Source of the DNA: Selaginella moellendorffii | Lineage: Eukaryota; Plantae; Lycopodiophyta | Direction: 5' to 3' | Assembly: GCF_000143415.4 (NCBI RefSeq) | Contig: NW_003314293.1 | Span: 1,618,457 to 1,682,456 of the forward strand | DNA length: 64,000 bases | Shown: one piece after another, positions 9,253 to 62,650 of the stretch | Layout: each line of letters starts with the position of its first letter | How positions within the stretch are numbered: position 1 is the stretch's first letter | Notes under the pieces: generated by a model | Told to the model about the DNA's origin: nothing | Seen by the model: only the letters and a program-made list of their open reading frames with translations | Database searches by the model: none | Program-made: the position numbers and the translations under genes

Positions 9253-9294
9253 TCACAAGGCTAGAACCCTAATGTAGCACGAAGTGGGGGAAGG

Positions 9295-13451: not shown

Positions 13452-13493
13452 GCTACCTCGGATATTCGCTCGCATCCTGGGATTTTAGGGCTC

Positions 13494-14054: not shown

Positions 14055-14284
14055 GCTTTAGAGGCTGGGATCTCGCACCAAACAACCATTCTTTGGATCA
14101 AGTAAGTGTTACGTTTTTCTTTTCTCTTCCTCTCCTTGTGTATTGAATTTGTGTTTGCTTTCTCTTGAAATTCTTGCGGTTCTTTCTATTTTGTCTTTGT
14201 TCTTTGCTTCAAATTTCAAGCTCTGCTCTCGCTTTGTTACGTCACACAATTACTGGCATGTCCCTGTTCCTTTCCTAGTTTCCA

Positions 14285-14570
14285 TCGTGGACGGGAAGGA
14301 GGGCAGGTAGCTCGTCTTGTTGGATGGAATCAGGAAGCTCATATTGTATTGTTCTTCTGTCAGATCAGTCAATCAGACGTTCTTCTCAAATTGATGTGCA
14401 ACAAGACAGTATGTCCATGCATCACTTCGAAGTTTCAGGTCTCGTCACGGAAGGGATCCGTTGTTTCCGTTTTCCTAGCCGGAGCTGGTCATTTGGATGG
14501 GCATGTGTACTTTTAGATGGGAATGACACTATGAAATAGGTGTCATGAGTTCGGAAGCTATCGTCACCTT
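14285..14570 (+). pseudogene. Collapsed chalcone isomerase 5' relic (copy A)
   Basis: GTGGACGGGAAGGA..CAGGTAGCT is shared with the CHI upstream region at ~39682. cag|GLVTEG...FLAGAG and tag|GV match CHI exons 2-3 at 39860-40010. Confidence 0.6.
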
Positions 14571-15559: not shown

Positions 15560-15742
15560 TCAATAGCAAGGGCCAACAAATGGAGGAGTGCTGTAGCAGA
15601 TCCCGGGATTGCAGCAGAAGGGCATGCTAGATGGGCACTGTGAACTACTTGTGCATCTCCGGTCCTGAGCACTAGCGACTTCCACAAAGCAAATTACTAC
15701 TAGAGCAGCAACCAGCGCAAACAAAACCGCGAACTTCGACAT
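15560..15742 (-). CDS. Small secreted 6-Cys peptide (knottin/hevein-like spacing), copy A
   Basis: Signal peptide MSKFAVLFALVAALVVICFVEVASA plus QDRRCTSSSQCPSSMPFCCNPGICYSTPPFVGPCY. Confidence 0.8.
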   Translation of the reverse strand: MSKFAVLFALVAALVVICFVEVASAQDRRCTSSSQCPSSMPFCCNPGICYSTPPFVGPCY

Positions 15743-17379
15743 TGTGAAACCAAGATGATTATTCCTCTTGCAGCCCACCTATTTATGAACCAAGTATTTC
15801 TATCACGAATGCCTAAAGGTCGGTCAAGATTAACATACGCAGTGCCTTCGAGGAACATGATAATGACTGAGAAGTCAGAGCAGCTGTTCACAAGTGGACT
15901 TTATATAATTAAGTGCTTGAGAATATTCTTAGAATATTTTCCTTTTATTGTGGAGATTAATGTTTATAATTTTCAACCTGTTTACTTATTAACATTAACT
16001 TTTTGTTTTAGGGTGATGCAAGCTCAAGTCAAAGCTTTTGGATATCGAAGAACCAATTAGCCAGTAGTGAGTATGCATCATTTTCCTCTTGCATGATTTT
16101 TTATTTTTTAGTTTTTTACATCTTTCCTTACTAGGGTGCTTAAAAATCTTCTACGCAATGGAATTCCCAGCGATTCTGGGAAGAATGGTGTGGGAAATGC
16201 ATCACTGAGAAAAAGCCCATTCAAATTGAATCAATTGAATATCTCAGCTACCTTGCAAACACTTCCAATCTCATTGTACATCTCGACCAGTAGTTCTCTG
16301 GAACGCAATGATCATGACATATGCCATATATAGCAAGCAAGCTGCAAAGTGTGAGCTTTCTAACTATTCTGACAATCCATAGTTTCTCGCAGCAGAGATA
16401 TGATGGCGGCTCTGGTAAACTTTTATAGAAAGTCTAGCAATGTGGATGACTTATGAGCAGTGAGGATGAAGCAGCTGAGCTTGGTAACCTGGAGCACAAC
16501 ACTCACACATAGCAGGGGCACCCCAATGCAGTATTTTTAGAGCAAAGACCTCTGCCACATGCCACATCATGAGAGGCAATGTCCTACCATATAATTGATA
16601 AAACTTATAAAATAGGTATTAGATGAGAGGAGGAAGCTCAATGAGATGTAGGTTGCTGAATGCTGATGGGAATTCAGTACAAAATTGGTAGTGCATAAAT
16701 CTTTTCTACTTCTCCCAAGAGAGCTAAAGTAACTTTATGTGTAAATAGAATTTAAATTTATAAAGGAATAAAATATTTATTATTTGTGCTTATTATTATA
16801 TAAAGTTTTTATTTAACCACTTTTTTTTCTATCTTTTCCAGATTAAGATCAAGTGCTTTTAAATTCATAACATATAAAGTAAATTACACACTTGTCAAAT
16901 ATTTGCCATCTTTATATTTATTAAGAAACACCCCATGGGATTTGAATTCACCTCCTCCTAATGAGTATTTGGGATTAATATGAACCCAAACTTAAATTAC
17001 ATGTTTGGATTAGTTTGGGCATTCCAAAGACTTTATAAAAATAGAGTTTTGAAAGGTGCTTAACACAAATTTATTTTTTTCTTATATTTTATTAGTGGTT
17101 CATTATTTCTCCTTCTTTCAACAATGAGCTCTTAATAATTGCATTGCTATCTCTTTCATGGCTCTAATATGATCTAATATCACTAGCTCTCTTAGATCCT
17201 TTTCTTCAACTCTAGTTAAATCTTGATATGCTATGGAAGTTATATTAAGTGTTGAAATAATGCAATATAGTACTTTACATGTAGCTTTAGCATATTTAGC
17301 ACCAACAATGACTTTTTTGTTTAAAGATAAAGATTTATATGCTAATAAAGTTTGATGGTTTGAGTGTAAGCAATTAAAA

Positions 17380-20160
17380 CGAACGACTTAAGAGATGATC
17401 TATTAGGGTTCAAATGGGCCATGAATAAAAATGTACAATTGATTAAAAGTTTTAGGATTTAGTTTAACATTCTTGGGGTAATATTAGGTTGAGTGACCTT
17501 TTGGGAAGTCTAAATTTAAGAGTTTACACTAAAGTAACCCTTAAGAAACATTTCTATCTTAGCTTTTATGATAATGTCAAAGATTTCATGCTCTCTCATC
17601 CGAAGTCAAGAGCTTACACCAAGTTCGATGATATAGCCTTTAAAAAACATTTTTACCTTGACTTTTGTGACAATATCAAAGATCTCATACTCTCTTATTC
17701 AGATATAACATCTCATACGACTGCTATTGATCTTGGTATTTGCTATAATAATCAATTGGAAGAATGATAATTGAAGTATTATCATCAAACCTTTGTGCCT
17801 CGTCTAATGACCTCAGTTTTAGAGTAACTAGCATATGAGAAAATAAGGGTTTTTTAGCACTGTAGGGAGAATTGCACAGTGGAATTTGATACTGCAATCA
17901 AGTACCTAGCAGATCATTCCTCACCTATACTATAGTAAGGTCTCGTGGACTTGACAATTGTTTAGAGTGGAATTTCAGTCAAGGATCTGGATTCTAGTGT
18001 AACTTTTAACTTAAGCAAGGCACAATTCCAATGGAAATTAAAGTTATATATTAAAGGTTTTTCCAATGTTGAATTAGACAATTCTCCCCTTCTCCAAATC
18101 TTCTTCTTATGCTTCTCTAATATTAATTTCTCACATTTCTTTACATGAGTTTTGGCCATTATAATTCTAGTTTTGTCTTTGCAATTACTATTCATGCAAT
18201 GTCAACTTCATCTATCATGATCAAGTTTACTTTTTCCTTAAGTAGGTTGATTTTAAGGATATTTTCAACAAGAGGAGAGTTAATATTTTGCCATTATATC
18301 AACTTTATGATTATTTTATTGATGTTATAGAAAGGAAATTACTACCATTTAGTCATATCTATAATCTTTTACTACTAAAGTTGGAAACCTTATATATACA
18401 TATCAAGAAGAATTTTTCTAAAGGTTTTTCTTAGTCTTTAGCTAGTGCACATATATTTTCTTTATATCCAGAAAGGACAAGTCTCTTCATTTAGTGATTA
18501 ACTACTATAGCTTGAACAAAGTCACTATTCTCAATTAACATTTACTTTTATTAATTCTTAAGATGTTGGAATGGCTCTCCAAGGTTTGATTCTTCACCAA
18601 ATTGTAAGTAATTAAATTTTTCATTTTACTTTAATCACTTGAACACAACTTTGACCATTTGGAAGAGTCTCACTCACAACCTTTATAAATTTTATTTTCG
18701 ACTTGGGGATATGCTAGCCCCATGAATGGCATATATGCCACTTAGATTTTGCACTTTGTCCAAGTGCTCTACATATTTAAAGCTATGTTCATTTACCCTT
18801 ATCTTTTTGGTAGTCTAAGATCACCTATGCTATAGTCCCATCTTTCAAAGACTGGGCCATCTATTTATGAGTGGCCATCCCATAACCACATTTTAACATC
18901 CTTAAGATGTCCAAAAACATAGGAACACCCTTCCCTAATGTCCCTTCTTCAGCCCCCATTAAGTCCCTCTCCATCCATGGTTGTGCTTGCCAATGCCACC
19001 ACTAGGTCAGGGCTCAAAAGTTTGACCACTAAGTGTCACTGACTTCTAGGACTTTTTCACCATGTGACCATGCTTTTAGTTAATATACATAAGGACTACT
19101 CCTCTTCTTTTTTATATGGGACAACATTTTGAAACACCACAACCAAATGCAAGTCTCATAGGTACTCTCCTTACTCCCTGGCCTTTGGGTGCCCTAGCTA
19201 TGTGGCTAGAGCGAGGTTCCAATGAACCACATTTAGTATCCAAGTAGGTAATGCACCCACATTTGGATTGAGAGCATTGACTATTCGATTTCTTAAGAAA
19301 GCTAGAGCTTGCTCTTAAACACTTAAGTTATCCCACTTATCCATTCATGTTCATTATAGCCTTGGACTCCTTAGTGGTTATATCATCACCCACTATATGG
19401 GTATAACCTTCTTTGATCACATTAACATTTTTTAGCCAAATTAATTCCACTAAAGTCCTCCATACTTTTGGAGCTCACCAAACCCTTTAGAGTTTGGGAG
19501 ACAATCACTTTGAGCTTTCACTCTCAAATTCAGACTTGGACTTGGACTTGAACTCTAACTTAGACTCAAACTCGGTCTTGGTCTCGGTCTTAGCCTCGGT
19601 CCCAATCTCGGTTTCCATTTCAAACCCAATTTCGGTATCGCGAATGTAACTTCGAGTATCGAAAGTTACTTATCAGCTAATCTTTTTGGATATTCTTTCT
19701 TTACTACCACAATGGCAAAAAGTTAGTATTGTTAGTCCCTTTTTCAATCTCCACCTAAACTAGTTGAGAAATTGGTCTTTGTGTGTGCATTTAATTAGAT
19801 AAGCATAAGGATGGAATTTCAAAGTAGCACATATGATCATAGGATAAGATTTAAATATACTGTCACCATGGATCCTTGAAATTTTAGGGGATAAATGGGG
19901 ATAAAATAACCACTAAAGACTTTTTCATTAAACAATTACCCCTTTTTTAGTTATTTTAAAGGGAGAGAAATAAAGTGTATTACATTTGGTATTAAAGGAT
20001 ATGTTTTAGCGAGTATTATTTATTGAGATTAAGCAATTAATCTCATTACATACATAAAGATTAAAATAATGATTCAAGTGGTACACATTTAGGTGCAAAA
20101 GGCTTCGCATTTGTTCATTAGGTATGGATTTTGGTTACCTTTTTATATTGTATTATGTGA
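17380..20160. mobile_element. Decayed retroelement-derived repeats
   Basis: AT-rich with no long ORFs. 17380-17470 matches 43870, 44290 and 49635. 19660-19800 matches 48805-48940. 6-bp (GACTYG)n array at 19530-19620. Confidence 0.5.
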
Positions 20161-21816
20161 GCTTGTGTGTGTGTGTGGACAAATGTGGGAAAAAATTTCT
20201 TGTGAGCCCATTTGGTGTCTCCTGATCTTGCTTATTATTCACCCACCTTTCTGATTTCTCCTAACACTTCACTAAATGTGCAAGTTTTAAACATGAGCTC
20301 TCTCTTGCTACTACCTTCTTTTTATCCCACCTCTTGAATCTACTGCCCCTTGAGCTGCTGATGATTCACAAGCCCCACAAAAAAAAAAAAAAAGGAATTA
20401 TTTTTGGCTGGACAAGTAGGCAGAGATATAAGCAATTTGGTCAACATGGAGGAATTCAAGGTTTTTCAAAGTTTCCTTTAAGAGTTCAAAGTTTTTGTTG
20501 TAGAGACCAGCGTTAAAGAGGGCAAGCACTATCTCTTGATTATATCATAGAAAAGTAAACAAGGTAAAGGGGATGGATTGATTCACAGAGATCACGAACG
20601 CTTTGGGCGGAATTCTAAATGGAACGGCTGAGATCATGATCAAGATTCACCACAAGTGGGCAAATACGCGACCATCTCCCAAGTCAAAATGCGGGTGAAT
20701 ACTTTTAGGATAACGCCGAGGAATCCCTGACTGCCAAAAAAATCCAAAAGGGAAGTTGACAATGAATGGGGAAGCTTGCCTGCCAGCTCACACCACCTTT
20801 AAATCTAAGCTCGTTTTTGTCAGTGTTTTCTCGATCTCCTTCTTATTTAACTTTCCACTCTCGTTCTATCTCTCACGTGGTACCAACAATGTACCCTTAA
20901 GGATGAATCGATATTGGCTCTCATTTCCAATCCACTGTTGGAGATTGTGCAACGAGATTGTTGCTTTTTGCTTGGGGAGAAGGGAGATTTCGTTTGAAGT
21001 GTTCTTCTTCTGTAAAGCAAAGGTGGTGGGCGTGTGTGTGCGTGCTTTCCATGATTGCGTACATGATTGAGTGGAGCGTGCACTATAAGGAGCTCACACC
21101 AAGAGGGGCTTATTCCCATTGGAGGTTGGCGAATTTTCCATACCCCCCCATTCATGTACCTTCGCACAGCAAGAACAAAAAACACCCAAGAAAAACGAGG
21201 CATGCGAACCACCGCCACCTTGGATGGATGATTCGCAGCTGATGATTTGCATGGAAGCCATACAGTGAAAATTGGAGCTTCTCGTTTGTCCCCAATTTAA
21301 AAAAAAAAACTCAAAAGAATGAATTATTACTTTAATCATCGCTGGTCAATCAATCAGTAAAACAAGAAAAAAAAAAAAGTGGGAATTTGACCGAGGTATT
21401 GTTTGGAAGCATAGGCACAGGTCGATCGATTTTAATGGGGTGGTACCACTACTACAAAAGACTGGGCGGCCGTAAGCATTGTCCTCTTGCTTTCCGCCAA
21501 ACAAACACAACAATCACTGGCTTGCTTACGTCCAAAGAAAGGATGAAGATCGAAGATGCAACAGGTATTATCCTTTCCTCATTCTTTTATAAAACAAAAA
21601 ATGTAATCGAACTTCTTGGTCGGTAAAAGCAACACTTTCAAAGTCAAACGAGCAGTTGTCACCGTGTTCATCAATGTTTGACTTGTGACAAGGACTGGCA
21701 CTGATATATTCCCCGGATCTTTCGGTCAGGGCTCGAATCGCGAGACGCGTGTAGCCGTTGGAGGGAGATTTAAAGCTACCTCGGATATTCGCTCGCATCC
21801 TGGGATTTTAGGGCTC

Positions 21817-22331
21817 ATGGCGAGGAAGAGGAGGGCGCTGGCCGTCAAGAGCAGCAATGCGAGGGCGGGGGAGGAGGAGGAGGACGCGGCGGCGGCGGAG
21901 GATGATCGCGTGGCGGAGCTGTGCCGGGCGATAGATTTGCAAGGTGAGAGGCTGCATTCGGGGGGAAATCTCTCAATCTTGGTCTCGACAGTGCAAGCGA
22001 GGGCGGCGGCGATTCGAGCCATCCGCGACGCGCAGATCGCCGAGTTCCTGGCGCAGCTCCAGCTCCACTGGACATGCCGATTTGCGAGTTCCTGGAGCGG
22101 TTCTGCCCTAACACCGAGCTCGTGTGCAAGGAGAGCGGAGTGGTGGAGATGAGGAAGAAGAAGCTGCTGACCAGCGATGCCGGGGACCCTCTGGCTTCCT
22201 TGTTTGCGCTCAGTGCGCTCAAGAACACTAGCGCCACCGCCGCCAAAAAGAGCTCCGCTTCCTTCTTTTGCACGCCGCGAACCTTGGGGGGTGGGATATC
22301 CTCGAGCATGAAGACTCGAAGTATGCGCTGA
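21817..22331 (+). pseudogene. Borealin-related copy B, frameshifted
   Basis: A 25 nt deletion (GCAGGCGAGCTTGTCGGAGGAGATG) at ~22067 relative to copy A shifts the frame. The poly-Ala tract is also shorter. Confidence 0.8.
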
Positions 22332-22562
22332 GCTTTAGAGGCTGGGATCTCGCACCAAACAACCATTCTTTGGATCAAGTAAGTGTTACGTTTTTCTTTT
22401 CTCTTCTCCTTGTGTATTGAATTTGTGTTTGCTTTCTCTTGAAATTCTTGCGGTTCTTTCTATTTTGTTTTTGTTCTTTGCTTCAAGTCTCAAGCTCTGC
22501 TCTCGCTTTGTTACATCACACAATTACTGGCAAAATGTCCCTGTTCCTTTCCTAGTTTCCAT

Positions 22563-22851
22563 CGTGGACGGGAAGGAGGGCAGGTAGCTGGTCTTGTTGG
22601 ATGGAATCAGGAATCTCATATTGTGTTGCTCTTCTGTCAGATCAGTCAATCAGACGTTCTTCTCAAATTGATGTGCAACAAGGCAGTATGTCCATGCATC
22701 ACTTCGAAGTTTCAGGTCTCGTCATGGAAGGGATCCGTTGTTTCCGTCTTCCTAGCCGGAGCTGGTCATTTGGATATTGGCATGTGTACTTTTTTAGATG
22801 GGGGTGACATTATGAAATAGGTGTCATGAGTTCGGAAGTTATCGTCACCTT
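22563..22851 (+). pseudogene. Collapsed chalcone isomerase 5' relic (copy B)
   Basis: cag|GLVMEGI...SVFLAGAG, duplicate of 14285-14570. Confidence 0.6.
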
Positions 22852-23703
22852 GAGGAAAAAATCCTGAGCAGATAATGGCTGCCTCAACAGGATATCAATG
22901 GTTTGACTTTTTGGTTCACCTGACAGGGATTGTTGCTGCTTGCCACAGCTCCGATGGAGATCTTCTTGCTGGGAGCTGGGAGCTCAAGCGCATGACAAGC
23001 CAACTTGTTGCAATCCGGGCATTTGCTATCAGAGTCCTCCGTTTATCGGGGCTTGCTATCTGTGAATTTCATGAACAGCATGACAATGGTCTCTGCAATT
23101 GCGGAATGAATAAACAAATGTTTTTCTAATCCATCAACAGCAAGTTGGAGCATTTCCTTAATCAGCTGACCTATTTACATTGAGGCCTTCCGTGAAATGG
23201 ATCTATTAGGAAATCCCGAGACTCAGTCCGGTTTCTGTTCCAACAAAACATCAAACTTCCTTCTGGAACGAAATGTCTTACTGTAAAGCTGAAAGGGTCC
23301 TCGCCAGGAGGCCCCATGGGAGGATGAGGTTCCTCCTCCACACGAGATGGAGGATCCACGGCATGAGTTATCACACCCAGAGCATGTCCAGAAGGATCCA
23401 CACCACCCTAAGACATTCAATTAATTCTTCCAGTGTATTTGTACAATTTCTTCCACAATAATCTCATATAACAACTCGGCTCCATGAGAATTTCATGATC
23501 CCTGTGGTAATGCCTTGTTGTATGTCACTAGTTAATGGCTAATTTGTTTGTATGTGAGATTCCTGTAGTTTCAACTGGGCCAAACCGCCGATAATCACCA
23601 CTAGATAGAAAGCATGAAATTGTGAGTTCTGAAACAACTATGCATAGCTTCAGATAAAGAACAGTTTATTCATTCAACCATTTGTGCTTGTACATGCTAC
23701 TGA

Positions 23704-23886
23704 TCAATAGCAAGGGCCAACAAATGGAGGAGTGCTGTAGCAGATCCCGGGATTGCAGCAGAAGGGCATGCTAGATGGGCACTGTGAACTCCTTGTGCAT
23801 CTCCGGTTCTGAGCACTAGCGACTTCCACAAAGCAAATTACTACCAGAGCAGCAATCAGCGCAAACAAAACAGCGAACTTCGACAT
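23704..23886 (-). CDS. Small secreted 6-Cys peptide, copy B
   Basis: Intact. Differs from copy A by V>I in the signal peptide and D>N, S>R in the mature peptide. Confidence 0.8.
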   Translation of the reverse strand: MSKFAVLFALIAALVVICFVEVASAQNRRCTRSSQCPSSMPFCCNPGICYSTPPFVGPCY

Positions 23887-26800
23887 TGTGAAACCAAGAC
23901 GATTATTCCTCTTGCAGCCTACCTATTTATGAACCAAGTGTTTCTATCACGAATGCCTAAAGGCCGGTCAAGATTTACATTCGCAGTGCCTTCGAGGAAC
24001 ATGATAATGACTGAGAAGTCAGAGCAGCTGTTCACAAGTGGACTTTATATAATTAAGTGCTTGAGAATATTCTTAGAATATTTTCCTTTTATGGTGGAGA
24101 TTAATGTTTATAATTTTCAACCTTTTTACTTATTAACATTAACTTTTTACTTTGTTCTAAGCTCAAGTCAAAGCTTTCGGATATCAAAGAACCAATTAGC
24201 CAATAATGAGTATGCATCATCTTCCTCTTGCACGATTTTTTTTTTTTTTCATCTACTCGGGTGCTTGAAAATCTTCTACGCAATGGAATTCCCAGCGATT
24301 CTGGGAAGAATGGTGTGGGAAATGCATCACTGAGAAAAGGCCCTTTCAAATTGTCTCAGCTACCTCGCAAACACTTCCAATCTGATTGTACATCTCGACC
24401 AGTAGTTCTCTGGAACGCAATGATCATGACATATGCCATATATAGCAAGCAAGCTGCAAAGTGTGAGCTTTCTAACTATTCTGACAACCCATAGTTTCTC
24501 GCGGCAGAGAATACGATGGCGGCTCTGGTAACTTTTATAGAAAGTCTAGCAATGTGGATGACTTACGAGCAGTGACAGGTCATAGGATGAAGCAGCTGAG
24601 CTTGGTAACCTGGAACACGACAATCGCTGGCTTGCTTACGTCCAAAGAAAGGATGAAGATCAAAGATGCAACAGGTATTATCCTTTCCTCTTTCTTTTAT
24701 AAAACAACACCATAGTGAGATAGAAATAAGCACAACACTCACACATGGCAGGGCCTCCACAATGCAGTAATTTTTAGAGCAAAGGCCTCTGCCACATGCC
24801 ACATCATGAGAGGCAATGTCCTATGCTCCAGATAATTGATAAAACTTATAAAATAGGACTTAGCTGAGAGAAGGAAGCTCAATGAGATGTAGGCTACATA
24901 TAAAACAAACTTTCATGCTGAATGCTGATGGGAATTCAGTACAAAATTGGTAGTGCATAAATCTTTTCTACTTCTCCCAAGAGAGCTAAAGTAACTTTAA
25001 TTTAAATTTATAAAGGAATAAAATATTTATTATTTGTGCTTATTATTATATAAAGTTTTTATTTAACTACTTTTTTTTCTATCTTTTCCAACAGGGATTA
25101 AGATCAAGTACTTTTAAAGCCATAACATATAATATAAATTACATACTTGTCAAATATTTGCCATCTTTATATTTATTAAGAAATATAATCAATACTAACC
25201 ATGGCAAGAATTAAACCCTAAACCTCTACTCATTCACCTTGAGTTAAGTAGTATTAGATTGGATAACCTTCTGGGAAGTCCAAATTCAAGAGCTAACACT
25301 AAATTCGATAACATAACTCTTAAGAAACATTCTTACCTTGGGTTTTATGATAATGTCAAAGATTTTATGCTCTTTTATCCAGATTCAAGAGCTTAAACCA
25401 AGTTTGACAATGTAACCCTTAAAAAAAAAATTTACCAACAATGTTAAAGATTTCATACTCTCTCATTCAGATCTAACATCTCTTACAACTATCATTGATC
25501 TTAGCATTTGCTATAATAATCAATTGGAAGAATGATAATTGAAGTATTATCATCAAACCTTTGTGCCTCCTCCAATGGCCTCAGTCTTGGAGTAACTAAC
25601 ATATTAAAAAATGAAGGTTTTTCATGCCATGTGGAGAATTGCACAATGGAATTTGATACTGCAATTAAACCTAGCAAATCATTTCTCACCTATACCACAA
25701 CAAAGTCTGTGGACTTGGACAATTGTTTAGGGTGGAATTTCAGTCAAGGATCTGGATACTAGTGTAACTTTTAGTTTAAGCATGGCATAATTCCAATGGA
25801 AATTAGAGTTATATATTAATGGGTCTTTCCAATGTTGAATGATAATGTTGAATTAAATAATTCTTCACTTCTCCAAATCTTCTTCTTATGCTTCTCTAAT
25901 ATTAATTTCTCACATTTCTTTATATGAGTTTTGGCCATTATAATCCTTGTTTTTTGCAATTACTATTCATCTAATGTCAACTTCATCTATCATGATCAAA
26001 TATACTTTTCCCTTAAGTAGGTTGATTTCAAGGATATTTTCAACAAGGGGAGAGTTAGCATCTTGCTATCATATCAACTTTATAACTATTCTACTGATCT
26101 TATAGAGAGAAAATTACCACCATTTAGTCATATCTATAATCTTTTACTACTAAAGTTGGAAACGTTATGCATACATATTAAGAAGAATTTTTCTGAAGGT
26201 TCTTCTTAGTCTTTAGCTAGTGTACATATATCTTCTTTATATTCAGAAAAGATAAGTCTCTTCATTTAGTGATTAACTACCATAGCTTGAACAAATTCAC
26301 CATTCCCAATTAATATCCACTTTCATTAATCCTTGAGATGTTGGAGTGGCTTTCCAAGGTTTGATTCTTCACCAAAATGTAAGTGACTAAATTTTCCATT
26401 CTACTTTAATCACTTGAACACAGTTTTGACCATTTGAAGGAGTTTCACTCACAACCTTCACAAATCCTATTATCGACTTAGGATATGCTACCCCCATAAA
26501 TAACATCTATACCTTTGCACTTGATCCAAGTGCTTCATGTATTTCATCCCACGATAGACACTCTAAAAGTACCACTGACATACTAGCTTTCATTTTTTGT
26601 TGGGTCTAATGCGTAATAGGGATAGTGGTTAGGTCTAATTGAGATATTATTTGACTCCCTTCTAACATTGTTTTTGTTTTATATCCAATTTGGGTTTAAA
26701 CTCAAGTTTCATACCATGCTAGATATTGGTATATTGAAATAGTGTCAAATTCCATTTATATTGGTATATTGAAATAGTGTCAAATTCCATTTAACTTTGT

Positions 26801-49797: not shown

Positions 49798-50950
49798 TTA
49801 TAGGTGTCCTGAGACTAAGGCAAAGATCACAGAATTTACGGGCATACGCATCCAAAGATAAAGCCCCTGCTGAATCTCTAACAGCTGGTTCACGAGATCA
49901 ACCTTTTCAAACTTCTTGACAAATGAAGCATAAAAAACCTTTGTCAAATCAATCCAAGAAGTCGACTTTGGATTAACTTTGATGTAGTTCTTCCACCACG
50001 AATAAGCATGGCCCATAAGCTTCGTCACAAAAAAATTTATCTTCAACTTATCCTTACAAGGATTGTAAGACCAACAAATTTCCCACAATTCCAACCAAAA
50101 ATCAACCTCTTGACTATCACAAATATTTAGTGATGATTTCCATTCCACGATACCATAATCCTTGGCATGCTTGACATACTAATAGTAATCACGAACATGA
50201 GATCGATTTAACCCTTGAGGTCTATGTGAAGCAAGAAATCCTTAATGAGATTGATGGAATCCTTAACTTCCTTTATGTCACTCTGAACCTCAAAAATCTA
50301 GTATCCTTGCCACATAACGACATCATCAAGAGTCTCTTCTACATTGTTATGGCCATCATCACTAATGCCATACTCCTCATCAAGATCAATATCTTGCTCA
50401 CCCGCCATCCCCAAAAGAACATGTTGCTCTGATACCAATGAAATGAACAAAAGATTGAACCCTTGGCCAACCTCCCAACCCATCCCACAGGCCATGAAAT
50501 ATTCTTAAAATATTCTCTGGGTGTCAAAGAGGGCTAGGTGCTAAGTATTCCTAAGGCACTATGCTGCAAAGGAGAGGGAGAGAGCCATTAGGGTTCTGGT
50601 AGGACTGAGGTATTCCCTAATCCATCCTTGCTATGCTTTGAATAGATGTTTCCTGAGAGGGAGATCCAGCAGCCATGGGATGATCCAAGAGGCAGAGAGT
50701 CATGGATTCCAGAGAGGCAGAACTAAAGGGTTTGAGAGGGAGATAGATTTCCTGTCATGGACATGAGAGTGCTTAGATGCAAAGGGAGAGTGATCTCATA
50801 TTCATGTCATTGACATTGAGAGGGAGTGTCAGAGATATACAATCTCCATGACATGAGAGTCTATGTGACATGAGTGCCACATCACTGATCCAGATGTAGG
50901 ATAGTCACGACTATTGATCATGTATATGCATTATGATATATCAAAGTGAG
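49798..50950 (-). mobile_element. LTR retrotransposon 5' end: LTR, tRNA-Met PBS, gag fragment
   Basis: Minus strand ...CA TTGGTATCAGAGC, PBS at 50437-50426. gag-like WLELWE...KLMGHAYSWW. Far end of the LTR approximate. Confidence 0.8.
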
Positions 50951-52288
50951 AGTCATCCACCATTGTTTTGCTTCTGTGTCTTTCATATTTCTTCTTTGTT
51001 TGTTTGGACCTTATGGAGAAGATCCTTGATAAATAGAAAGGGTGCTATTATAATCCAAGTGTGCATATGAAGAACAATTTGATACACTTACATATGCAAA
51101 TAGTCAATGTTATGCATGTGGGGACCTTCGATCACCAGACTACAAAATTAACATTCAAGCTTATGTTACTCACGAGAGAACCAAGAAGCTAAACAATGGG
51201 GTCTACATCAATGAAAATCTAGGTATTGTCAAGTTTGCTGGAAGAAACAGTAGCATCAGTGTGTCCCAAGCCTTCGTCAATACAAGCCATCAGTAAGATC
51301 AAGAAGCAAGTTAGAGGCATCTTGAGAACTCGGGGCTACAAACTATGTGCTGCAATGATCTTGGTGTCTTTCTTTGGTTATATGCTTCTTGCGGGAGTTA
51401 TCCATCGCTATTACATCTTTCCACAAAACCACAACACTTACAAAGCTTTCTCCAAAGGGTTTCATCTCGCTCATGGAATAAGTTGCTGGTATTTTTCCAG
51501 CGTAAGTCGCACTCCATTTTACAAACCAAATATTGATCGACAATATAAAATCCTGCAAGCAAGATCACACATTACAGTTCAAAATTGAGAGGATGAAAGT
51601 ATTTGAGTTTGTGAGCTTGACAAAGTACTCCCACACTTTCCTGCATTGCAAACAAACACTCCCACATTCCTTCCTTCCTTTGGAATGCTCCGGAATAATC
51701 TCTACATAAATCACCGGTTATAGGCCTAATTTCTCTAAGACTGATCAACTCACCTTGAATCTCTGGATGCTTTCCGTACTGAATGCTGGTTGGTTTGAGG
51801 CCAAATTCAGCTGAAATGGAACCCACATATGGCGCATCTACAAGGTCTTTTCCTTTCCACCAGGTCCAAGTGAGAATCCGTGTTCCAGCAAAGAACACAA
51901 CTGAATAAAGTTACCTTTCGTGACAGGACACAAACACTGCCTTTTATAATCCTTGACTTTCTTACAACAGTTGTTTGAGGTATCCGTTTTCATGGCACCA
52001 CAATGATTAACATTTTGAGTTATTTTCAGATGAGCCAAGGCATTGTTAGTTGTACTAGTTGATCAGCAGAAGATTTACATAATGCCAGAACTGTAGTACT
52101 TCGAGTGCTAGTACTTTGAAATATGAATTTGCTAGTTCTTGATTATAACAAGGATTTTTAGATGCTGCATTGCATACTAAAGCTGCTGGACGAAGGCTTG
52201 ACTCCTCAGAGCTTTAAGGGCCGAGGAGAAAGATCGGTTGAAATAAAGCAATGTTTCTTAAGAAAGTTACATTACTTAAATTACTGAT

Positions 52289-53270
52289 TTAAATACTGCT
52301 GAATTTCGGGGGATCACGAGGGAACGATATGTCCGATAGGATATTGCATTTCCCACGCTCCAGTCTCATGTAACCTCCTTCTCCCCAGCTCCTACCCCAC
52401 CAGTTTTTGAGAATCCAATACTCGACCCCATGTTGTGTCCGTCCATAGCCGACTATGAGTACAGGAAGGCTGGCCTTCGAATCAGAGCAGGGGCCTGAAT
52501 ATATGCCCTGCACACGCGCGCAAAGAGTTTGCTATCAAATGCCCACATCCAGGAGACGTAACTTACTCCAGCATATGAATCAAATTCAGAAGCACTACCA
52601 TCAATTCGAGCAATCACCGGCTGCTTTGACACGACCTCTACCAAGAAACTATCACTCGTTCCCGGCACAGTTCCGATTTGAGACATGGAAACATCATTAG
52701 TCTGTAAGGATAAGTTCAAAACGGTCAGTGCGACTTAAAACAACATCATGACATACGAATGGCTTGCAGGAACTTTGAACGCCCGTATACGGGTACTTCG
52801 AGTCAGTAGTAATCCCCTGCAGGCGAATGTAGTTGAACGCATGGTAAGGATCTGCAGTACCCTTCTCATTGCATCCGCTGTTGTATCTGTTGCAATCGAT
52901 CAGTTGCTGTGGTGAGAGCACCACCATCCTTCCGGTTTGTATCGCTTTGAGGCTCTCCACTGCACCTGCTGCTGCAAATGCCCATGACCCACCTGCAAAA
53001 CTTGTGAGTAAGATATTTTCTTATCAAGTGAGTGACAAACAAAACCTTTGCAGCTTTTGCGAAGATCCACATCCCAGACTCTAGAAACAGCTCCAGATTC
53101 CCTCCAGTCGACTGAATTGCTGAAGCTCGCCTCTTGAGACAATGCCTGTAAATTGAACTTGGGGCCCAAGTTTGCATGTTAGCGGGTGCACTGATCAGTA
53201 CCTGGATCCAGATCAACGACATTGTGAAGAAAAGAAGAAAGGAGAGTTGCAGTGGAGAAAAATATGCCAT
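52289..53270 (-). CDS. Secreted papain-fold (C1A) protein without prodomain or catalytic dyad
   Basis: Exons 53270-53202, 53145-53046, 52992-52757, 52701-52567 and 52507-52289 all in phase, 252 aa. SVDWRESGAV, LSPQQLIDC, YPY, YWILKNWWGRSWGEGGYMR. Active site reads CKGGSWAF and ASLPVLIVG. Confidence 0.9.
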
Positions 53271-53353
53271 TTTGATTGTTGTCCGACCTACACAAAAAGT
53301 TCTTCCCATTTGTACCACCCACGTCATTTTCATGATATATGTATTTTACTGGA

Positions 53354-54778
53354 GGCATGCTTCTCTCACTCTTACCTTTTATACTTCATACTTCACGTGG
53401 TTTACAATTAGGCTGTCTTTTCGGAGGTTGACAACAGTGGAGAAAAAGACATTTGCGCGTTTCTCACAACGACTCTAGGTTAGCATATAACAAGCTATGT
53501 ATGTTAATAGACATCCACTGCGTTTCTCATACTCTTACATTTTAAACTATTAAATCCACGTGTAGATGTAGGCTGCTAATAAGTATGAATAAGAGCCCAT
53601 TTCCATATGCATTGTAATCACTTCATTTTCAAAGTCTAGATTAGAGTTAAATGTAGAAACATCAGGTGTAGAGCACGTGGTTTACAATTAGGATTCATAT
53701 ATAAAAAACAAATCCTTACAAGATTCTATCTATTCACATTTTTTTCATCTAACATTAGATGTTTTACTATTTAAATGGTTGGCATTTGAATATAAGATAA
53801 CTTTCTTTCACATTGCAATATAAATCCGGCATGCTTCTCTCACTCTTACCTTTTATACTTCATACTTCAGGTGGTTTACAATTAGGCTGTCTTTTCGGAG
53901 GTTGACAACAGTGGAGAAAAAGACATTTGCGCGTTTCTCACGACGACTCTAGGTTAGCATATAACAAGCTATGTATGTTAATAGACATCCACTGCGTTTC
54001 TCATACTCTTACATTTTAAACTATTAAATCCACGTGTAGATGTAGGCTGCTAATAAGTATGAATAAGAGCCCATTTCCATATGCATTGTAATCACTTCAT
54101 TTTCAAAGTCTAGATTAGAGTTAAATGTAGAAACATCAGGTGTAGAGCACGTGGTTTACAATTAGGATTCATATATAAAAAACAAATCCTTACAAGATTC
54201 TATCTATTCACATTTTTTTCATCTAACATTAGATGTTTTACTATTTAAATGGTTGGCATTTGAATATAAGATAACTTTCTTTCACATTGCAATATAAATC
54301 CGGCATGCTTCTCTCACTCTTACCTTTTATACTTCATACTTCAGGTGGTTTACAATTAGGCTGTCTTTTCGGAGGTTGACAACAGTGGAGAAAAAGACAT
54401 TTGCGCGTTTCTCACGACGACTCTAGGTTAGCATATAACAAGCTATGTATGTTAATAGACATCCACTGCGTTTCTCATACTCTTACATTTTAAACTATTA
54501 AATCCACGTGTAGATGTAGGCTGCTAATAAGTATGAATAAGAGCCCATTTCCATATGCATTGTAATCACTTCATTTTCAAAGTCTAGATTAGAGTTAAAT
54601 GTAGAAACATCAGGTGTAGAGCACGTGGTTTACAATTAGGATTCATATATAAAAAACAAATCCTTACAAGATTCTATCTATTCACATTTTTTTTTCATCT
54701 AACATTAGATGTTTTACTATTTAAATGGTTGGCATTTGAATATAAGATAACTTTCTTTCACATTGCAATATAAATCCG
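53354..54778 (+). repeat. 474 bp tandem repeat, 3 copies
   Basis: Units start GGCATGCTTCTCTCACTC at 53354, 53828 and 54302. Almost identical, each with CACGTG motifs. Confidence 0.97.
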
Positions 54779-54798
54779 CGTACACCAGACTGAGGAGC

Positions 54799-55939
54799 AT
54801 GGGACTTAATTTACCTCATTTAGCAATGGCTAAATGGCTACTACTTTTCTTTGTCTTGGTATTGTTCTTCCGATGCATTTTGGGCAATGATTGAATTGTT
54901 TCATTGTGATGAAGGTTTTTGGTGCAAACGGAAAAAGATCCCCATTGTATGGTGGAACCGATGGGGAAAATTTCAGTGACGGTCAGTCTCAGGGTATTGT
55001 GAGAGTCAAGATCTGGTCTGGGTATATTGTGGATGGGATACAGGTTCAATCAGATCAAGGGGGAGAACATGTTTGGTCTGATCCTCATGGCACTTCAAAG
55101 GGGGAAGCCAAAGAGGTAGCTATTTGTAATGCTCATCTTCTCCTAAGATTTCTTTCAGGTGGTTTTAGCTTATCCGGATGAATACATCTACAAGATTTCA
55201 GGGCGCACTGGACCAAATCCATGGACTTCTAATGGCTTGAGTAGGCTTTACTTGCACGTCAACAATAGAAGGACCAATGCCCAAACTACCTTTGGCCCAT
55301 TTGGTACCCACGACTACTCCAATCAGACTACATTTGATTCCCCAGAAGGGACAGTGGTTGGATTTTTTGGTTATGCCTCTTCAACAACATACTTCCGAGG
55401 AATTGGCGTCTATTTCCAAGATCCTTGTGACTGTCCAACACCATCACCACCGCCTTCTCCACCTCCACAACCGCTGCCATCACCCCGAAGACCTTGCAAA
55501 GGCTATCAATGGAGCACAACTGGAAGTAGTTGTTGTTGCGTGGAACGCGAATCTAAGAAGCACACATGCTGTCAATCATCAACTCGAGAGTGCCCGCCCT
55601 TGAGATATGGCGAAGCTCTTCCACCAGCATCCCCAGTACGATATCCGCCACCCAGATTNNNNNNNNNNNNNNNNNNNNNNNNNNNNNNNNNNNNNNNNNN
55701 NNNNNNNNNNNNNNNNNNNNNNNNNNNNNNNNNNNNNNNNNNNNNNNNNNNNNNNNNNTTCACCACGGCCACAACCGACATTGGGAAGATGTCCAAGGTT
55801 TGATAGGTATTGCCAAAGTAAGTCTGGGCGGAAGTTTTGTTGCTGCGTGCCAAATAGCACTGGAAAATGTGGATCCACCCGGACGTGCTGCTGTGATTCT
55901 TGTAGCCCACGGAAGAATTGTGCCCAGTGTTGGGCTTAG
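54799..55939 (+). CDS. Secreted jacalin-related lectin with Pro-rich linker and Cys-rich modules (gap inside)
   Basis: Exons 54799-54858, 54915-55115 and 55159-55939. Signal peptide, PLYGG.DG, SGYIVDGIQV, PDEYIYKISG, TFGPFG, VVGFFG, then PSPPPSPPP and two CCC...CC modules. The frame after the gap is inferred. Confidence 0.85.
55659..55758. other. Assembly gap (100 N)
   Basis: Run of N inside the lectin's second Pro-rich linker. Confidence 1.
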
Positions 55940-58149
55940 AGGATGTAATCAGAAAATATTATGAACTTAATATGAATTTATTATAAAATAAATATAAATA
56001 ATAATTCCAAAAATAGACTGAAAGAAGAAAAAAATATAATATTTTTTGGACAACTTTAGTAATGGCAAAAACTAGCTAAAAATAGATGATTTTGTTTGCT
56101 TAAAAAGACTAGATGTTCTAAGATATTCTACTTAATGGTTGTTATTCATTTGGATTAATTTTATTTTTTTAATTTATAAACTTTTTGGTTTGCTTAAGCA
56201 AACCTGTAAAGGGATGGTAGTGGAAGGATATTCTATCATCTAAGGGTTGTTATTCATTTAGATTAATCGCTTCCCGGCAATCCGTCCACTCCACTCTTGG
56301 ATTTCGTCTTGGCCACCACAGCACAAGGAAGAAAAGCTTCCTATATTTATAATTTATAAACATTCCTAAACACTTCCTAGTATATTCTAGTTTATTTTAC
56401 CATCTAATGGTTGGTATTCAGTAAGATTAATCTTGTGTTTATAAATTATAAACATGTATATAGCTATAAACTTCCATTTGATCAATTAGATTAATAAATA
56501 TAAATAACAGATAAATATACCATGATATATATATATTTTTGTTATCACTTCCAGGATTTTCCATTTAAAGAAGTAAGTGAAGTGGCAAAATTTGCAATAT
56601 TACCATTTCTTTTGATGCAATAAATGGTCATTAGTGCCAGTTTACTAATTTTTGTTTTGGTGGGAGGATATTCTAGGTGAATATCCTCCTCTCACTTTGC
56701 TTTGTTTGCTTCATTGAACAAAAAGGACTACCCTAGTTGTCCTTTATATATGGTTCCGTACCTCCTAGGAAAAACAAATCCCTTATGAAAAAGTTGCTGG
56801 AAAGAAGAAACTGCCAAGAAACTCTAGAAAGACATCTCAACCAAAAAATGGTTGACAAACAATGTTCTGAGACAGATTTCAAGACCAAACTCCAGGCAAA
56901 GATGAGTAGGAAACAAATTCATATTTCCATCAATCGCTTGGATCACTTGCGTCTTGGCAGATTGCCTGTCCCGGTAGTACACAACACAAGGATCTTGCTT
57001 GTGCACAACAATCCCCAAAGCAACCTTTGCCCTGCCTCACTTGCTAACCAGCACCTCCATATCATTGAAAACACAAAAAGATGGAAAAGTCTCGAAATAT
57101 CTAGACAGAAGTAATGGCCTGTCTGGACTGAATAAGGCATCCAACTGACCAACCCGTACTTTGTACCTCCCTGTGCTTTCAATGTAGTTAAAACAAGTAT
57201 CAAAGATACATAAAAGCAAGAACCATATGAGGCAGGCTGAAACAACATAATGCAATTGAAGAATGCATAGCAATTTGATCAAAGAAATTCTGTCTCATGA
57301 CACTGAATGAATAACCCTGCTTAAAGGAAAGAAACTTATCTCGTAAGAGAATCATAGTGTGGACATTCCTGTAATCCACCACATGAATAACATTTCCCAG
57401 GATAGTTGCGAAATGCTGTGCTCCCAACACAATATTGGACCTCTTCATTGCTAAACTGCAAAGTTGAAAAACACATCATGCATAAGTGTTAAAGATTGGA
57501 CAAAAAAAGAAACACCAAATACCAAATGTAGGGAAACAAGAAGGAACCAATTTAGAGAAAATACCTCTTGACATGATTACCACTGATCAGATTTGGCAGT
57601 TTTGAACCTGTAAGCTCTGCAAGCCAGTAGGAGTTTGTCCATGCACTCTTAAAGACTTGATACAGGGAGGTTGAAACTTCACTCTATGGTGCAAAGCATG
57701 AAGGCACCAAACAACACACATGGGGGGGGAGTTTTCACCTCATTGCTGTGCATGCATAAGAGCAGTGTGATATTGTTGAATCTGAATACAAACAGCTGCA
57801 ATATCTAGATCCTCATCCAACTGATCTGTGGAATTGGTGTGAAGATCCTGTGATGTCCTAATAATTGTAGTGGGATCTGCTTCCTAGAAGGAGATCTGGT
57901 AGGAGGTAAACAATGTTGTATGGGGAGAATTGCTTCCAAACTATACACCAATTGGAATGGAGGGAGCTTCCCTATTGTCTTATATATCCATATGGTAATA
58001 GGGTTGGCTAGGCATGGGAATTATCTTGAATAACCTTCTAGAAGATTGTCTTGCGTGACTTTTCGTAACCTCAACCTGGCCATTCCTTTGAGGCTAGTAA
58101 GAACTCAACTTAAGATGAGAAATCCCAAGTGTTGTTGTGAGGTTAGTAA

Positions 58150-60279: not shown

Positions 60280-62650
60280 AAAGTGTGTTTCATAATTCAC
60301 CATCATTTGATTTAATTGAATTATGAATTGGTTTGGTTGTGGCAATCATCAATGAGATCTTCAATGCTTGGGATAGGGAACTTGCTTTAACTGTGAGCTT
60401 GTTTTACTCTCTATAATCCACGTGATAATCAGGGCAGGGGCTTGAGCTTTCTTCTATCATGTCATCATCTATCAGCTCGTCAATCATTTTGTCAACCATC
60501 TCTCTTTCCTGCCTGCTGAGGCACACGAACGGACTACAAGTTGGCCAAGTTCTTTCTTGAAGGCTTATGTGGTGTTGAACGCCTGTTTGCTCGATGGCCT
60601 CCTGAGAACAAACCTACCTTTGGGAACTTTTCAGCCAGTTGACAAACTGCTTCTGGAATATCTGCTGCTTTGATGTCCCATAATGCTTCTGAAATCGGCC
60701 CAAGCTCCTCAGTTTCCTGGGATTTTTCACTGCCCCCAGCTAATATCCTCCGAAAGAGCTGCCCTGCTCTCATTGCTAATCCTGAGAAGCTCAACAACTT
60801 TGAATCCCTCAGCTCAATTCTGCTTTCCTGCAGTGAAGCTTCTTTTCCTTCATCGGGTTGAGGCTTGTGGTCACTGCTTTCTTCATGCAGGGCTCCTTTT
60901 CCCCCGCTGCCTGAGTTTCCCTTGCAAGCTGGTTGCAACCTGCTTTCTTCACACAAGACTTCTTTTCTCTCGTGTGCAACTGCCATAGTATCATCCTCTT
61001 CTAAAGACACTGAAATGCACTCTCCACTTGGTGAAAGTTGCCCATACGTATGTCATAATACTAGGATTGCGCACTGTTGGAGATAAGATGTTTATACTGG
61101 GCTAGCAAAGCGGTCAAAACTGGTCAGCAAGGTCTAGCTCCAACCCAACGATGTGTGGCCATCCTTCTCAAAGGTTAAGTGCTTTTCTTAGAAGTTGACT
61201 ATGATGTCTCCTAGCTGCTGCAGAGTCTCCACTCCCAGTATGACATCAACTGCCCCCATGTCCAGCATCCAAAAGGATCCTGTGACCACATATCCTCCTG
61301 ATGTGGATGAGCAAGTAGTCTTTTGGCTAGCCTTGATCACTCCCCCATCAGTGATCTTCACCTCCAGAGGATGAGCTACATCGACTAGCAAAAGCTTCAA
61401 ATTTCCCAAAGACTTCCTGTTGATGAATGTGTGTGATGCACCTGAATCAATCAATGCAAAAGCCACACGTTGCCCCACATTACCTTGGACACAGAAACAT
61501 TCTGGCCCAGCCTTGCCCATAAAAGCTGGTAGTGAGACTGTTCCTCAAAGAGAAGCTGAGGCAAATTGAAAGGACCTATAAGAGTGGGCTCCTTATCCAC
61601 TAGTGTGTCGCTCACTGGGGCGTGAACCTCCATGATGAACACCTCACGATCATTGTCGATTTCATCCAGTTCACATGGTAGCAGATCACCCTGCTCGTTG
61701 GCTTGAAGTTGTATGCTAGAGACCCTGGCTCTTGGGTGTGGCACCTCCTGAGCCTTGCACACTGTGACTTCGATTCCATTTCTCGCCACAGTCAAAACAC
61801 TTGCCTTTACGCAAGTCTTTGAGCCTCTTATCACGATTTACTGACGCTGGGACTCCAGTGGAGGTCGTGAAAACTGCTGTGACTGGTGTGGTGCAAAAGG
61901 TTATGGTCGATTGTTTATAGCCTCTCTATGTCCATCATATCTACTAGCCAACTTCTCTTCCAAATCCCTCAACTTCATGTCTACATGCAATGCATACGTC
62001 ATTGCTTGATGAACTGTTAGCGGGTTTTGAGCAATATCAACAGCCATGGACGTTGGGAGAGATGCTATACACCTCTGCATCAAGGCCTCCTCCAGGATAT
62101 TGTTGACAGCATAACGAGCTTGCAGCCATTGTTCGTTGAACTCTTTCAAGGTGGTAGATAAACAATCCCGCATAGCTTATTGAACGGGTAACTCCTCCAT
62201 AGCCACGTTGATGACTCCTAACGAATTAGCTTCTTGAATGTTTCCCAGTTTGGAAGAGTGTGTGCTCTTTCTAGGCTGAAGAACCACCCTGAAGCCAATC
62301 CTTTGAGGTGTAAAGTAGCAAACGGCACTTTATAATCCTCTGAATGTCCTTCGTAATTGAACCATCATTCAATGCAATGCAACCAATCCTGCAGCTTGAT
62401 GATATCATTCTCCCCCCCATACTCAAGAACGTTGAGCTTATCTTTTTCCTGCCATAAGTTGGACACTATTGGGTAACAAGCTGGAAAAGTTGGACTGACG
62501 ATGGTGGCACCATGGGCTGGAAAGGTGGCACAACAACAGGCTGCTGCCACAGAGTGCCCGTCGATGCCGATGCTGCCTCGCCACTCCCCTGTGGTGAATT
62601 TGTTGTTCTAGGGAACATCGGGTTGGCTGGAGCGAGCTCAGGAGCTCTCA
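60280..62650 (-). mobile_element. Ty3/gypsy gag, protease and start of RT relic
   Basis: gag WLHCIE...ATLHLKGLASGWF, aspartic protease ALIDSGASHTFI...DVILG, RT start IEESSSP...VDYRE.NK.T. Confidence 0.88.

Follow-up and report, generated by a model that had tools for sequence, protein, structure and literature searches.

The genome of Selaginella moellendorffii contains a two-gene cassette of about 4.7 kb in which two divergently transcribed genes with secreted-looking products, a papain-fold protein on the minus strand and a jacalin chimera on the plus strand, are joined by a spacer that is present in one, two or three units. The three-unit copy lies in the 64,000-nucleotide stretch of DNA analysed here (the window), the two-unit copy in the allelic haplotype (L001) and the single-unit copy at a second, paralogous locus (L003), where the cassette is also whole. 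The three loci lie on the window scaffold, GL377610.1 and GL377578.1. The data support the conclusion that the cassette is kept as a pair at two loci. In the reading that we favour, with somewhat better than even confidence, it is a Selaginella-specific unit, recently duplicated in the genome, with a bidirectional promoter and secreted non-enzymatic binding proteins as its products. Both genes are already in RefSeq and unstudied, and a literature search by the locus tags and accessions of the pair found no paper. Newly described here are the paralogous cassette, the two-unit haplotype, the doubled 19-bp element in the spacer, the exchange of an Asp for Arg in the jacalin domain and the hypervariable Cys-rich modules. 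The pair is well documented and lineage-specific, and its function is a candidate one only.

The ATG codons of the two genes (at 53270 and 54826) are 1,555 bp apart. A preliminary description had placed the pair amid retrotransposon debris, and fragments of a gag gene (49798-50148) and of a retroviral protease (61188-61520) were indeed located on either side. Its claim of two divergent secreted-looking genes is borne out by exon structures resolved on both strands, with signal peptides judged by eye and, in addition, from an N-terminal helix in the structural model. Exons were searched singly and unjoined, and whole-protein work used the database models P0182, P0004, P0001 and P0002, which agree with the exon boundaries derived here. 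An Rfam scan of 51000-57000 returned no RNA family. The open reading frame at 51572-51898 was considered as TAL-effector repeats and discarded, the matches being summed sub-threshold repeat hits.

The papain-like gene (52289-53270, minus strand) has five CDS exons including the stop codon (53202-53270, 53046-53145, 52757-52992, 52567-52701 and 52289-52507), with introns of 56, 53, 55 and 59 nt that are all GT-AG. It corresponds to RefSeq 'ervatamin-B' X1/X2; the 252-residue product is isoform X2 (P0182), and in isoform X1 (P0004) the acceptor lies 12 nt upstream of that in X2. The two isoforms in RefSeq hint at transcript support. Single exons match Pfam Peptidase_C1, and P0182 matches PF00112 at 2e-50 over residues 33-243. 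The alignment-based AF2 model of P0182 has a pLDDT of 89 and was used throughout, while a single-sequence AF2 model (pLDDT 37) was set aside. In Foldseek it superimposes on procerain, ervatamin and actinidin with a TM of 0.9 and rmsd of 1.4-1.8 Å.

The residues needed for catalysis are replaced within this fold. In the alignment to ervatamin B the position of the catalytic Cys25 (P0182 residue 59) is occupied by a Ser codon (52985-52987, minus strand); the position was aligned also with ervatamin C and is Ser in all three gene copies. The catalytic His159 is replaced by Leu (residue 194, codon 52466-52468, minus strand), which stands opposite the His of both fibroinase and actinidin in a column that holds His in 47 of 60 aligned homologues. 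The oxyanion-hole Gln19 is Val (residue 49, codon 53068-53070, minus strand), followed by a 4-residue loop insertion that lies between this residue and position 25 and adjoins the latter. According to the same alignment Asn175 is retained. P0182 has exactly six cysteines, five at positions where Cys is invariant or almost so and the sixth opposite the C-terminal Cys of fibroinase, so that all disulfide cysteines are kept. Loss of Cys25, His159 and Gln19 together with retention of the fold residues agrees with the non-catalytic papain fold proposed earlier. The pseudo-protease begins with a signal-peptide-like N-terminus, which forms a helix in the model, and a Pfam search of P0182 gave no PF08246 match to an I29 prodomain; the Peptidase_C1 match begins with residue 33, just after the 23-residue first exon. 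A prodomain is normally needed for the folding of papain-like proteins, and its absence counts against the reading that we favour.

Several inactive papain folds offer comparisons. Soybean P34 (Gly m Bd 30K) resembles the spikemoss protein as a papain fold of the secretory pathway that lacks the catalytic Cys and has no protease activity; it is a plant member of the papain superfamily, inactive for want of this Cys, and carries pre- and pro-regions when synthesised (PMC2292165). In a comparison by description only, the spikemoss protein differs from P34 in having no prodomain, in the loss of His159 and Gln19 and in the insertion beside position 25. The nucleophile is likewise replaced in Plasmodium SERA, in the inactive cysteine proteases of the scabies mite and in sponge silicatein, chains of which appear among the structure matches of the pseudo-protease. 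These proteins belong to unrelated lineages with independent losses, and serine-type SERA and silicatein retain the His, unlike the spikemoss protein. The SERA and mite families comprise inactive or serine-type paralogues (PMC7132891, PMC5956821). Closer at hand, the Selaginella protein annotated as 'zingipain-2' (XP_024545824.1, P0055) shares Gln19Val, a Cys-x-Gly-Gly loop before position 25 and the loss of Cys25 and His159, but keeps the I29 prodomain and has Gly rather than Ser at position 25 and Thr rather than Leu at 159. It is the nearest relative found and the sister of the pseudo-protease in the tree (44% identical, SH-aLRT 92), with a branch length of 1.4 substitutions per site between relative and cassette genes.

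The jacalin chimera gene (54826-55939, plus strand) has three exons (54826-54858, 54915-55115 and 55159 to the stop codon at 55937-55939) and introns of 56 and 43 nt; exon 3 is broken by an assembly gap. The jacalin beta-prism domain (54915-55422) is split by the 43-nt intron (55116-55158), and Pfam Jacalin PF01419 matches exon 2 at 1.3e-7 (model positions 4-61) and exon 3 at 4.3e-8 (65-136). In its C-terminal Gly-x-x-x-Asp loop the sugar-binding Asp is replaced by Arg (codon 55396-55398), which stands opposite the Asp of Parkia lectin 1zgr in a loop longer by 2 residues. Selaginella jacalin domains have been reported without the motif that bears this Asp (PMC6362431). The domain is followed by a first Pro-rich linker (55423-55494) and, from 55495 up to the gap (region 55423-55658), by Cys-rich module 1, which has 7 Cys in the window allele and 10 in both L001 and L003. 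Beyond the gap (55659-55758), the segment 55760-55939 completes Pro-rich linker 2 and then encodes Cys-rich module 2 (12 Cys) up to the stop codon.

The gap falls in a collapsed extensin-like repeat, whose counterpart is complete in the allelic haplotype. Exon 3 of L001 is a single uninterrupted 374-codon ORF, in which window position 55658 corresponds to L001 10890 and 55759 to 11278. The missing sequence is 387 bp (129 codons) of an array of 42-bp Pro-rich repeats, and the 100 N of the window are a placeholder, where an in-frame Ser-Pro array is expected. The frames to the left (codons from 55495) and right (from 55760) of the gap are those of the uninterrupted allele. The repeats of L001, nine 42-bp units, encode about 130 residues of Ser-Pro(4-8); the L003 version is shorter. 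Ser-Pro(3-8) motifs of the kind that define extensins are found in the L001 and L003 chimeras, the window's share falling mostly inside the gap. The Pro-rich stretches show no Tyr cross-linking motif (Tyr-x-Tyr or Val-Tyr-Lys) in either L001 or L003, and we therefore call them extensin-like and not extensin. The full layout is present in L001 and L003, and with Pfam Jacalin in exons 2 and 3 the fusion of jacalin, extensin-like and Cys-rich parts described earlier stands.

The Cys-rich modules are hypervariable between copies, and the divergent variant of module 1 includes a 16% tract that could stem from a donor paralogue. Pfam assigned them to no family even at E = 10, PF00396 (granulin) included, BLASTP gave E of 1 or more against a granulin-bearing protease and no mutual similarity, a large protein search limited to proteins of 206-654 aa yielded no word-sharing candidates, and the ESM Atlas search had no match. 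The Cys-rich sequence starts with Cys-x5-Cys-x5-Cys-Cys-Cys, a pattern that may resemble plant granulin. Most mannose-type jacalins are cytoplasmic, whereas the spikemoss chimera looks secreted. The potato and tomato lectins of the Solanaceae, in which extensin-like domains are joined to hevein modules, and chimeric jacalins such as the dirigent-jacalins likewise combine a lectin-type domain with Ser-Pro-rich rods and Cys-rich modules; the spikemoss chimera differs from the Solanaceae lectins in that its Cys-rich modules have no Pfam family and its jacalin domain no sugar-binding Asp. Fusion of plant jacalin domains to other domains is frequent (PMC5485960, PMC6362431). The S. moellendorffii paralogue P0003, annotated as 'galactose-specific lectin', is similar to the chimera in its signal-peptide-like N-terminus, its Ser-Pro linker and its Cys-rich tail. 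Its jacalin part is 54% identical to that of the chimera and likewise has Arg for the Asp in a lengthened loop, but P0003 contains only a single short linker and a single Cys-rich module.

Between the two genes, a tandem array (53354-54778, plus strand; period 474, 3.0 copies, 99% matches) occupies 1,425 bp (92%) of the 1,555-bp interval between the start codons, in line with the three near-identical 474 bp units reported before. The units (53354-53827, 53828-54301 and 54302-54778) each end with TATAAAT (53819-53825, 54293-54299 and 54769-54775). The unrepeated proximal region upstream of the papain-like gene (53271-53353), as read from the sequence, appears to contain an ACGT-core element (53320-53326) and a TATA-like stretch (53330-53344). 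The 19-bp G-box element CACGTGGTTTACAATTAGG occurs twice in every unit and so six times in all (53394-54640, plus strand), starting at 53394, 53674, 53868, 54148, 54342 and 54622, those at 53868 and 54342 with 1 mismatch. The element is conserved in L001 and L003. CACGTG sites are enriched in the 1.4-kb array, which holds 7 of the 16 consensus matches in the window. A mobile-element origin of the spacer was considered and rejected: the spacer has no other copy within the window and is in place at the paralogous locus, and since no inverted repeats were found in it, it is not a MITE-like insertion.

Could the triplication be an artefact of the draft Sanger assembly, the true locus having one or two units? 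In favour of this, an assembly gap lies 880 bp downstream, in the jacalin gene, and a neighbouring 1.8-kb segment is inverted in the window relative to both other copies. Other observations speak against it. The units differ from each other by 2 substitutions and 2-3 indel columns and are hence distinguishable, each through private changes, and the 474-bp period fits inside the length of a Sanger read. Moreover, the other haplotype, assembled independently, has a tandem array with an identical junction and a different unit structure. We therefore give this explanation next to no credence.

The L001 spacer consists of two units of 631-644 bp. At L003 the single unit gives an ATG-to-ATG distance of about 720 bp, so that the pair at this locus has its starts within the approximately 1 kb that defines bidirectional-promoter gene pairs; the 1,555 bp in the window is due to the array. 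The tandemly duplicated segment begins 84 bp upstream of one ATG and ends 48 bp upstream of the second, and the unit junction is identical in both haplotypes. Divergence within the array (0-0.4%) is below that of allelic introns (0.9%), and together with the unit numbers of one, two and three this substantiates the recent amplification that had been suspected for the shared upstream region. At the window locus the whole spacer was duplicated in tandem once, after which unequal exchange reshaped and homogenised the arrays, giving 3 x 474 bp in the window and 2 x 631-644 bp in the allelic haplotype. In the scenario that we propose, the spacer would act as a bidirectional promoter, whose repeated G-box element may recruit bZIP or bHLH factors and so co-regulate both genes. 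Extra units would multiply the upstream elements while one proximal copy stays with each gene. Both products would enter the secretory pathway and act through non-enzymatic binding in the wall or apoplast, where the chimera might be anchored through hydroxyproline-rich rods.

A different account holds that the genes are young duplicates under relaxed constraint that are turning into pseudogenes, and that the structure of the spacer array is polymorphic but neutral and devoid of regulatory effect. In its favour, pN/pS is close to 1 both between alleles and in the jacalin gene. Counting exon by exon, then summing, and comparing within-species copies only, we found 6 nonsynonymous to 1 synonymous change between alleles of the papain-like gene, a pN/pS of 0.47 (p = 0.10) between this gene and its paralogue and of about 1 or above for the jacalin domain. 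The values between copies are indistinguishable from 1, but the counts are too small to separate 0.3 from 1. Signs of decay include the lost stop codon of the L001 pseudo-protease, the frameshift (+1 nt) in the signal-peptide exon of L003 with an altered C-terminus, and the shortage of cysteines in module 1 of the window; canonical active or binding residues are missing from both proteins, and the locus sits in repeat-rich, rearranging DNA. Against this, all three papain-like copies have an intact five-exon ORF and keep their splice sites and six disulfide cysteines despite the long branch, which at the sequence level indicates that the pseudo-protease has been maintained long-term. In addition, papain-like and jacalin-domain exons are no more diverged than introns, so any decay must be very recent. 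We consider relaxed constraint rather unlikely overall and continue to prefer a maintained cassette of secreted binding proteins.

It had also been proposed that the genes form a co-expressed apoplastic defence pair, with the dead papain fold as a decoy or binder of pathogen inhibitors, the lectin directed at pathogen glycans and the promoter triplication raising the dose. Tomato Rcr3/Pip1 offers a parallel to such a role, as a secreted papain fold proposed to act by being bound; as a guarded decoy, Rcr3 is proposed to be bound rather than to cleave substrates (PMC7468133) and, with the inactive soybean P34 (PMC2292165), provides a precedent. Unlike the spikemoss protein, however, Rcr3 is an ordinary proprotease whose active site is intact, and pathogen inhibitors target it. 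Secreted-looking products with a common spacer, the copy-number polymorphism of this spacer, G-box elements of a type bound by stress-related bZIP/bHLH factors and Cys-rich modules that are hypervariable, as in many interaction genes, all speak for a defence pair. Yet nothing links this gene pair to pathogens. The 4-residue insertion beside position 25 remodels the substrate cleft, so it is doubtful that inhibitors of active proteases would bind there, and the Arg in place of the sugar-binding Asp speaks, on sequence grounds, against the canonical view of a lectin in defence. In the Cys-rich modules synonymous divergence is as high as nonsynonymous, which points to exchange or old alleles and not to simple positive selection. 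The closest outgroup genes are unpaired, P0055 having no jacalin neighbour and P0003 no papain-like neighbour, and this too counts against the proposal, as do the lesion or oddity present in each of the three copies and the pN/pS values indistinguishable from 1. Complex prediction with the mature pseudo-protease (P0182 27-252) and the jacalin chimera (P0001 18-240) gave a score of 0.07 (mark 0.34), which we count neither for nor against the pair. Taken together, we judge a defence pair of this kind to be clearly improbable.

To our knowledge, almost nothing is known of pseudo-enzymes and chimeric lectins outside seed plants. The cassette offers a clean case of a papain fold that lacks both prodomain and catalytic apparatus and is still intact, next to a jacalin domain that lacks the sugar-binding Asp. 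In one sequenced individual the shared putative promoter region is present singly, doubled and tripled, a natural experiment in which allele- or locus-specific RNA-seq could measure the effect of tandem promoter duplication. A far-reaching and very improbable extension would be that the two proteins form an extracellular device for sensing or baiting, evolved in lycophytes independently of seed plants. In it the dead papain fold and a wall-anchored pseudo-lectin with hypervariable Cys-rich heads would be co-induced through the G-boxes of a single bidirectional promoter, with unit-number alleles (1, 2 or 3) and old, divergent Cys-rich alleles under balancing selection from pathogens. If a defence role were true, lycophytes would have arrived at bait-type extracellular immunity on their own.

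Exon boundaries were taken directly from the window sequence. The minus-strand papain-like gene (52289-53270) has introns of 56, 53, 55 and 59 nt and the plus-strand jacalin chimera gene (54826-55939) has introns of 56 and 43 nt, all of them GT-AG. Exons were queried one at a time, never joined, and whole-protein analyses were performed on database proteins. Two Selaginella moellendorffii database proteins correspond to the pair: RefSeq 'ervatamin-B isoform X1' (P0004) matches a minus-strand exon at 100% identity, and SELMODRAFT_416970 (P0001) matches exon 3 on the plus strand at 99%. The exon joins in these proteins and in ervatamin-B isoform X2 (P0182) are exactly those of the sequence-read models. 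The preliminary description of a divergent, secreted-looking gene pair was accurate. The 43-nt jacalin intron (55116-55158) is very short even given this genome's short introns, and the database proteins confirm it. RefSeq already contains both genes; they are unstudied, and literature searches with their locus tags and accessions turned up no paper.

The assembly gap in exon 3 of the jacalin gene (55659-55758) was the first point tested. L001 (GL377610.1) is the allelic haplotype, collinear with the window at 94-99% identity and without the gap, and its exon 3 forms a single ORF of 374 codons. Window positions 55658 and 55759 correspond to L001 10890 and 11278, and by this comparison 387 bp (129 codons) are absent from the window, comprising nine 42-bp units in an array coding for Ser-Pro(4-8) repeats. 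On both flanks of the gap the window is read in precisely the frame that L001 uses in its unbroken exon. The 100 N are a placeholder, and exon 3 of the window allele may likewise be continuous. RefSeq XP_024537545.1 (P0189) splices from just 5' of the gap (55623-55658) to integrase-like retrotransposon sequence downstream of 55940, and the splice of the gap-spanning GenBank model EFJ22014.1 enters the wrong frame. The C-termini of both gap-bridging models, P0189 and GenBank P0001, are annotation artefacts caused by the assembly gap.

Pfam identifies a single jacalin domain split into two halves on exons 2 and 3. The complete layout, as read in L001 and in the paralogous locus L003 (GL377578.1), has six parts in this order: a signal-peptide-like start, the jacalin domain, a Ser-Pro linker, Cys-rich module 1 with 10 Cys, a long Ser-Pro rod that lacks Tyr motifs and Cys-rich module 2 with 12 Cys. 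This bears out the proposed jacalin/extensin-like/Cys-rich fusion. The Cys-rich modules matched no known family in searches including Pfam, BLASTP and the ESM Atlas. The jacalin domains of the window and of the S. moellendorffii paralogue P0003 both have Arg where the sugar-binding loop normally carries Asp. This agrees with a published finding that the motif bearing the binding residues is missing from Selaginella jacalin domains (PMC6362431). Taken together, these observations make canonical sugar binding by the chimera doubtful.

The papain-like product has 252 residues, with the mature domain directly following a 23-residue hydrophobic N-terminal exon. A Pfam search gives a Peptidase_C1 match (2e-50) but no I29 prodomain. 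Alignment to solved enzymes places Ser at the Cys25 and Leu at the His159 position, and a MAFFT alignment of 60 homologues shows Val in place of Gln19 and a 4-residue insertion ahead of position 25. Asn175 is retained, and six Cys occupy the disulfide columns. An AF2 model built from an alignment has high confidence (pLDDT 89) and superposes on plant papain-like proteases with a TM of ~0.9. The product is thus a non-catalytic papain fold, as had been suggested. Its nearest relative is 'zingipain-2' (P0055), another S. moellendorffii pseudo-protease (44% identical, sister, SH-aLRT 92). Both have Val19 and a Cys-x-Gly-Gly loop, whereas only P0055 still has the prodomain, so active-site death preceded prodomain loss. 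No protein more than 50% identical was found outside S. moellendorffii in a library of 1.8 billion representatives. That the gene is still intact at the end of a long branch speaks for constraint in the past.

The spacer contains a tandem array (53354-54778) of 3.0 x 474 bp at 99% identity, covering 92% of the ATG-to-ATG distance, consistent with the three near-identical units noted before; each unit has private differences. The array is not a mobile element, since the window holds no further copies of the unit and the spacer has no terminal inverted repeats. L001 carries two units (631 and 644 bp) with a unit junction identical to that of the window and with their own indels and a small inversion. 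L003 carries the entire cassette with one 586-bp unit, which includes the sequence blocks of both haplotype versions. In the simplest history, a single spacer duplication would have occurred after the loci separated, and unequal exchange would then have altered unit number and homogenised each array. Every unit ends in TATAAAT, a 19-bp G-box element occurs twice per unit and is conserved at all three loci, and the array holds 7 of the 16 CACGTG sites in the window. We infer that the spacer is a shared promoter of the two genes and that unit number affects output.

Nucleotide divergence of the window from L001 and L003, respectively, is 0.9% and 2.2% in introns, 0.9% and 2.6% in papain-like exons, and 0.6% and 1.4% in the jacalin domain, compared to 16% and 21% in linker 1 plus Cys-rich module 1 and 6.6% and 12% in module 2. 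In module 1 it is the window allele that stands apart, with L001 and L003 separated by only 5 nt, and 3 of its 10 Cys are lost or replaced. The tract 55495-55620 (pS 0.24, pN 0.16 against L001) adjoins the assembly gap and has flanks diverged by less than 1%. As synonymous sites have diverged as much as nonsynonymous ones, the pattern is not what simple positive selection would be expected to leave; the tract rather resembles an old allele, the product of gene conversion by an unseen paralogue, or a mis-assembly of reads at the contig end. Outside module 1, substitution counts are too low for dN/dS. In L001 a 4-bp deletion within 7560-7640 removes the stop codon of the pseudo-protease, giving 271 instead of 252 aa. 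The L003 chimera has an altered C-terminus. Its signal-peptide exon, in the region 9200-9290, has gained a single base, and the annotated product therefore begins at an internal Met and lacks a signal peptide. Speculatively, the frame would be recovered by use of a splice donor 6 nt downstream.

Directly 3' of the papain-like gene, a 1.8-kb segment (50273-52065) is inverted relative to L001 7406-5623 (95.8% identity), its part 51490-51902 also relative to L003. This is either an inversion private to the window haplotype or a scaffold mis-orientation. Minus-strand retrotransposon gag (PF03732, 49798-50148) and retroviral-type aspartyl protease (PF08284, 61188-61520) fragments flank the cassette 2-5 kb away. 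A large direct repeat of ~6 kb (12286-18477 and 20536-26252; copies 7.8-8.3 kb apart, 85-100% identical) is probably a tandem duplication or an LTR-type element.

The pair is retained at both the window locus and L003, which is weak evidence for linkage because the loci were copied together as one segment. Within 10 kb of P0003 and of P0055, the closest outgroups of the two genes, there is no gene of the opposite type. The head-to-head pairing is thus a young arrangement, limited to this cassette. The two products may form an apoplastic defence pair, as originally hypothesised. The finding varies on known kinds, namely a pseudo-protease, a chimeric lectin-like wall protein and a promoter copy-number variant. 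It is valuable chiefly because nature has here set up a test of how promoter dosage affects a divergent gene pair.
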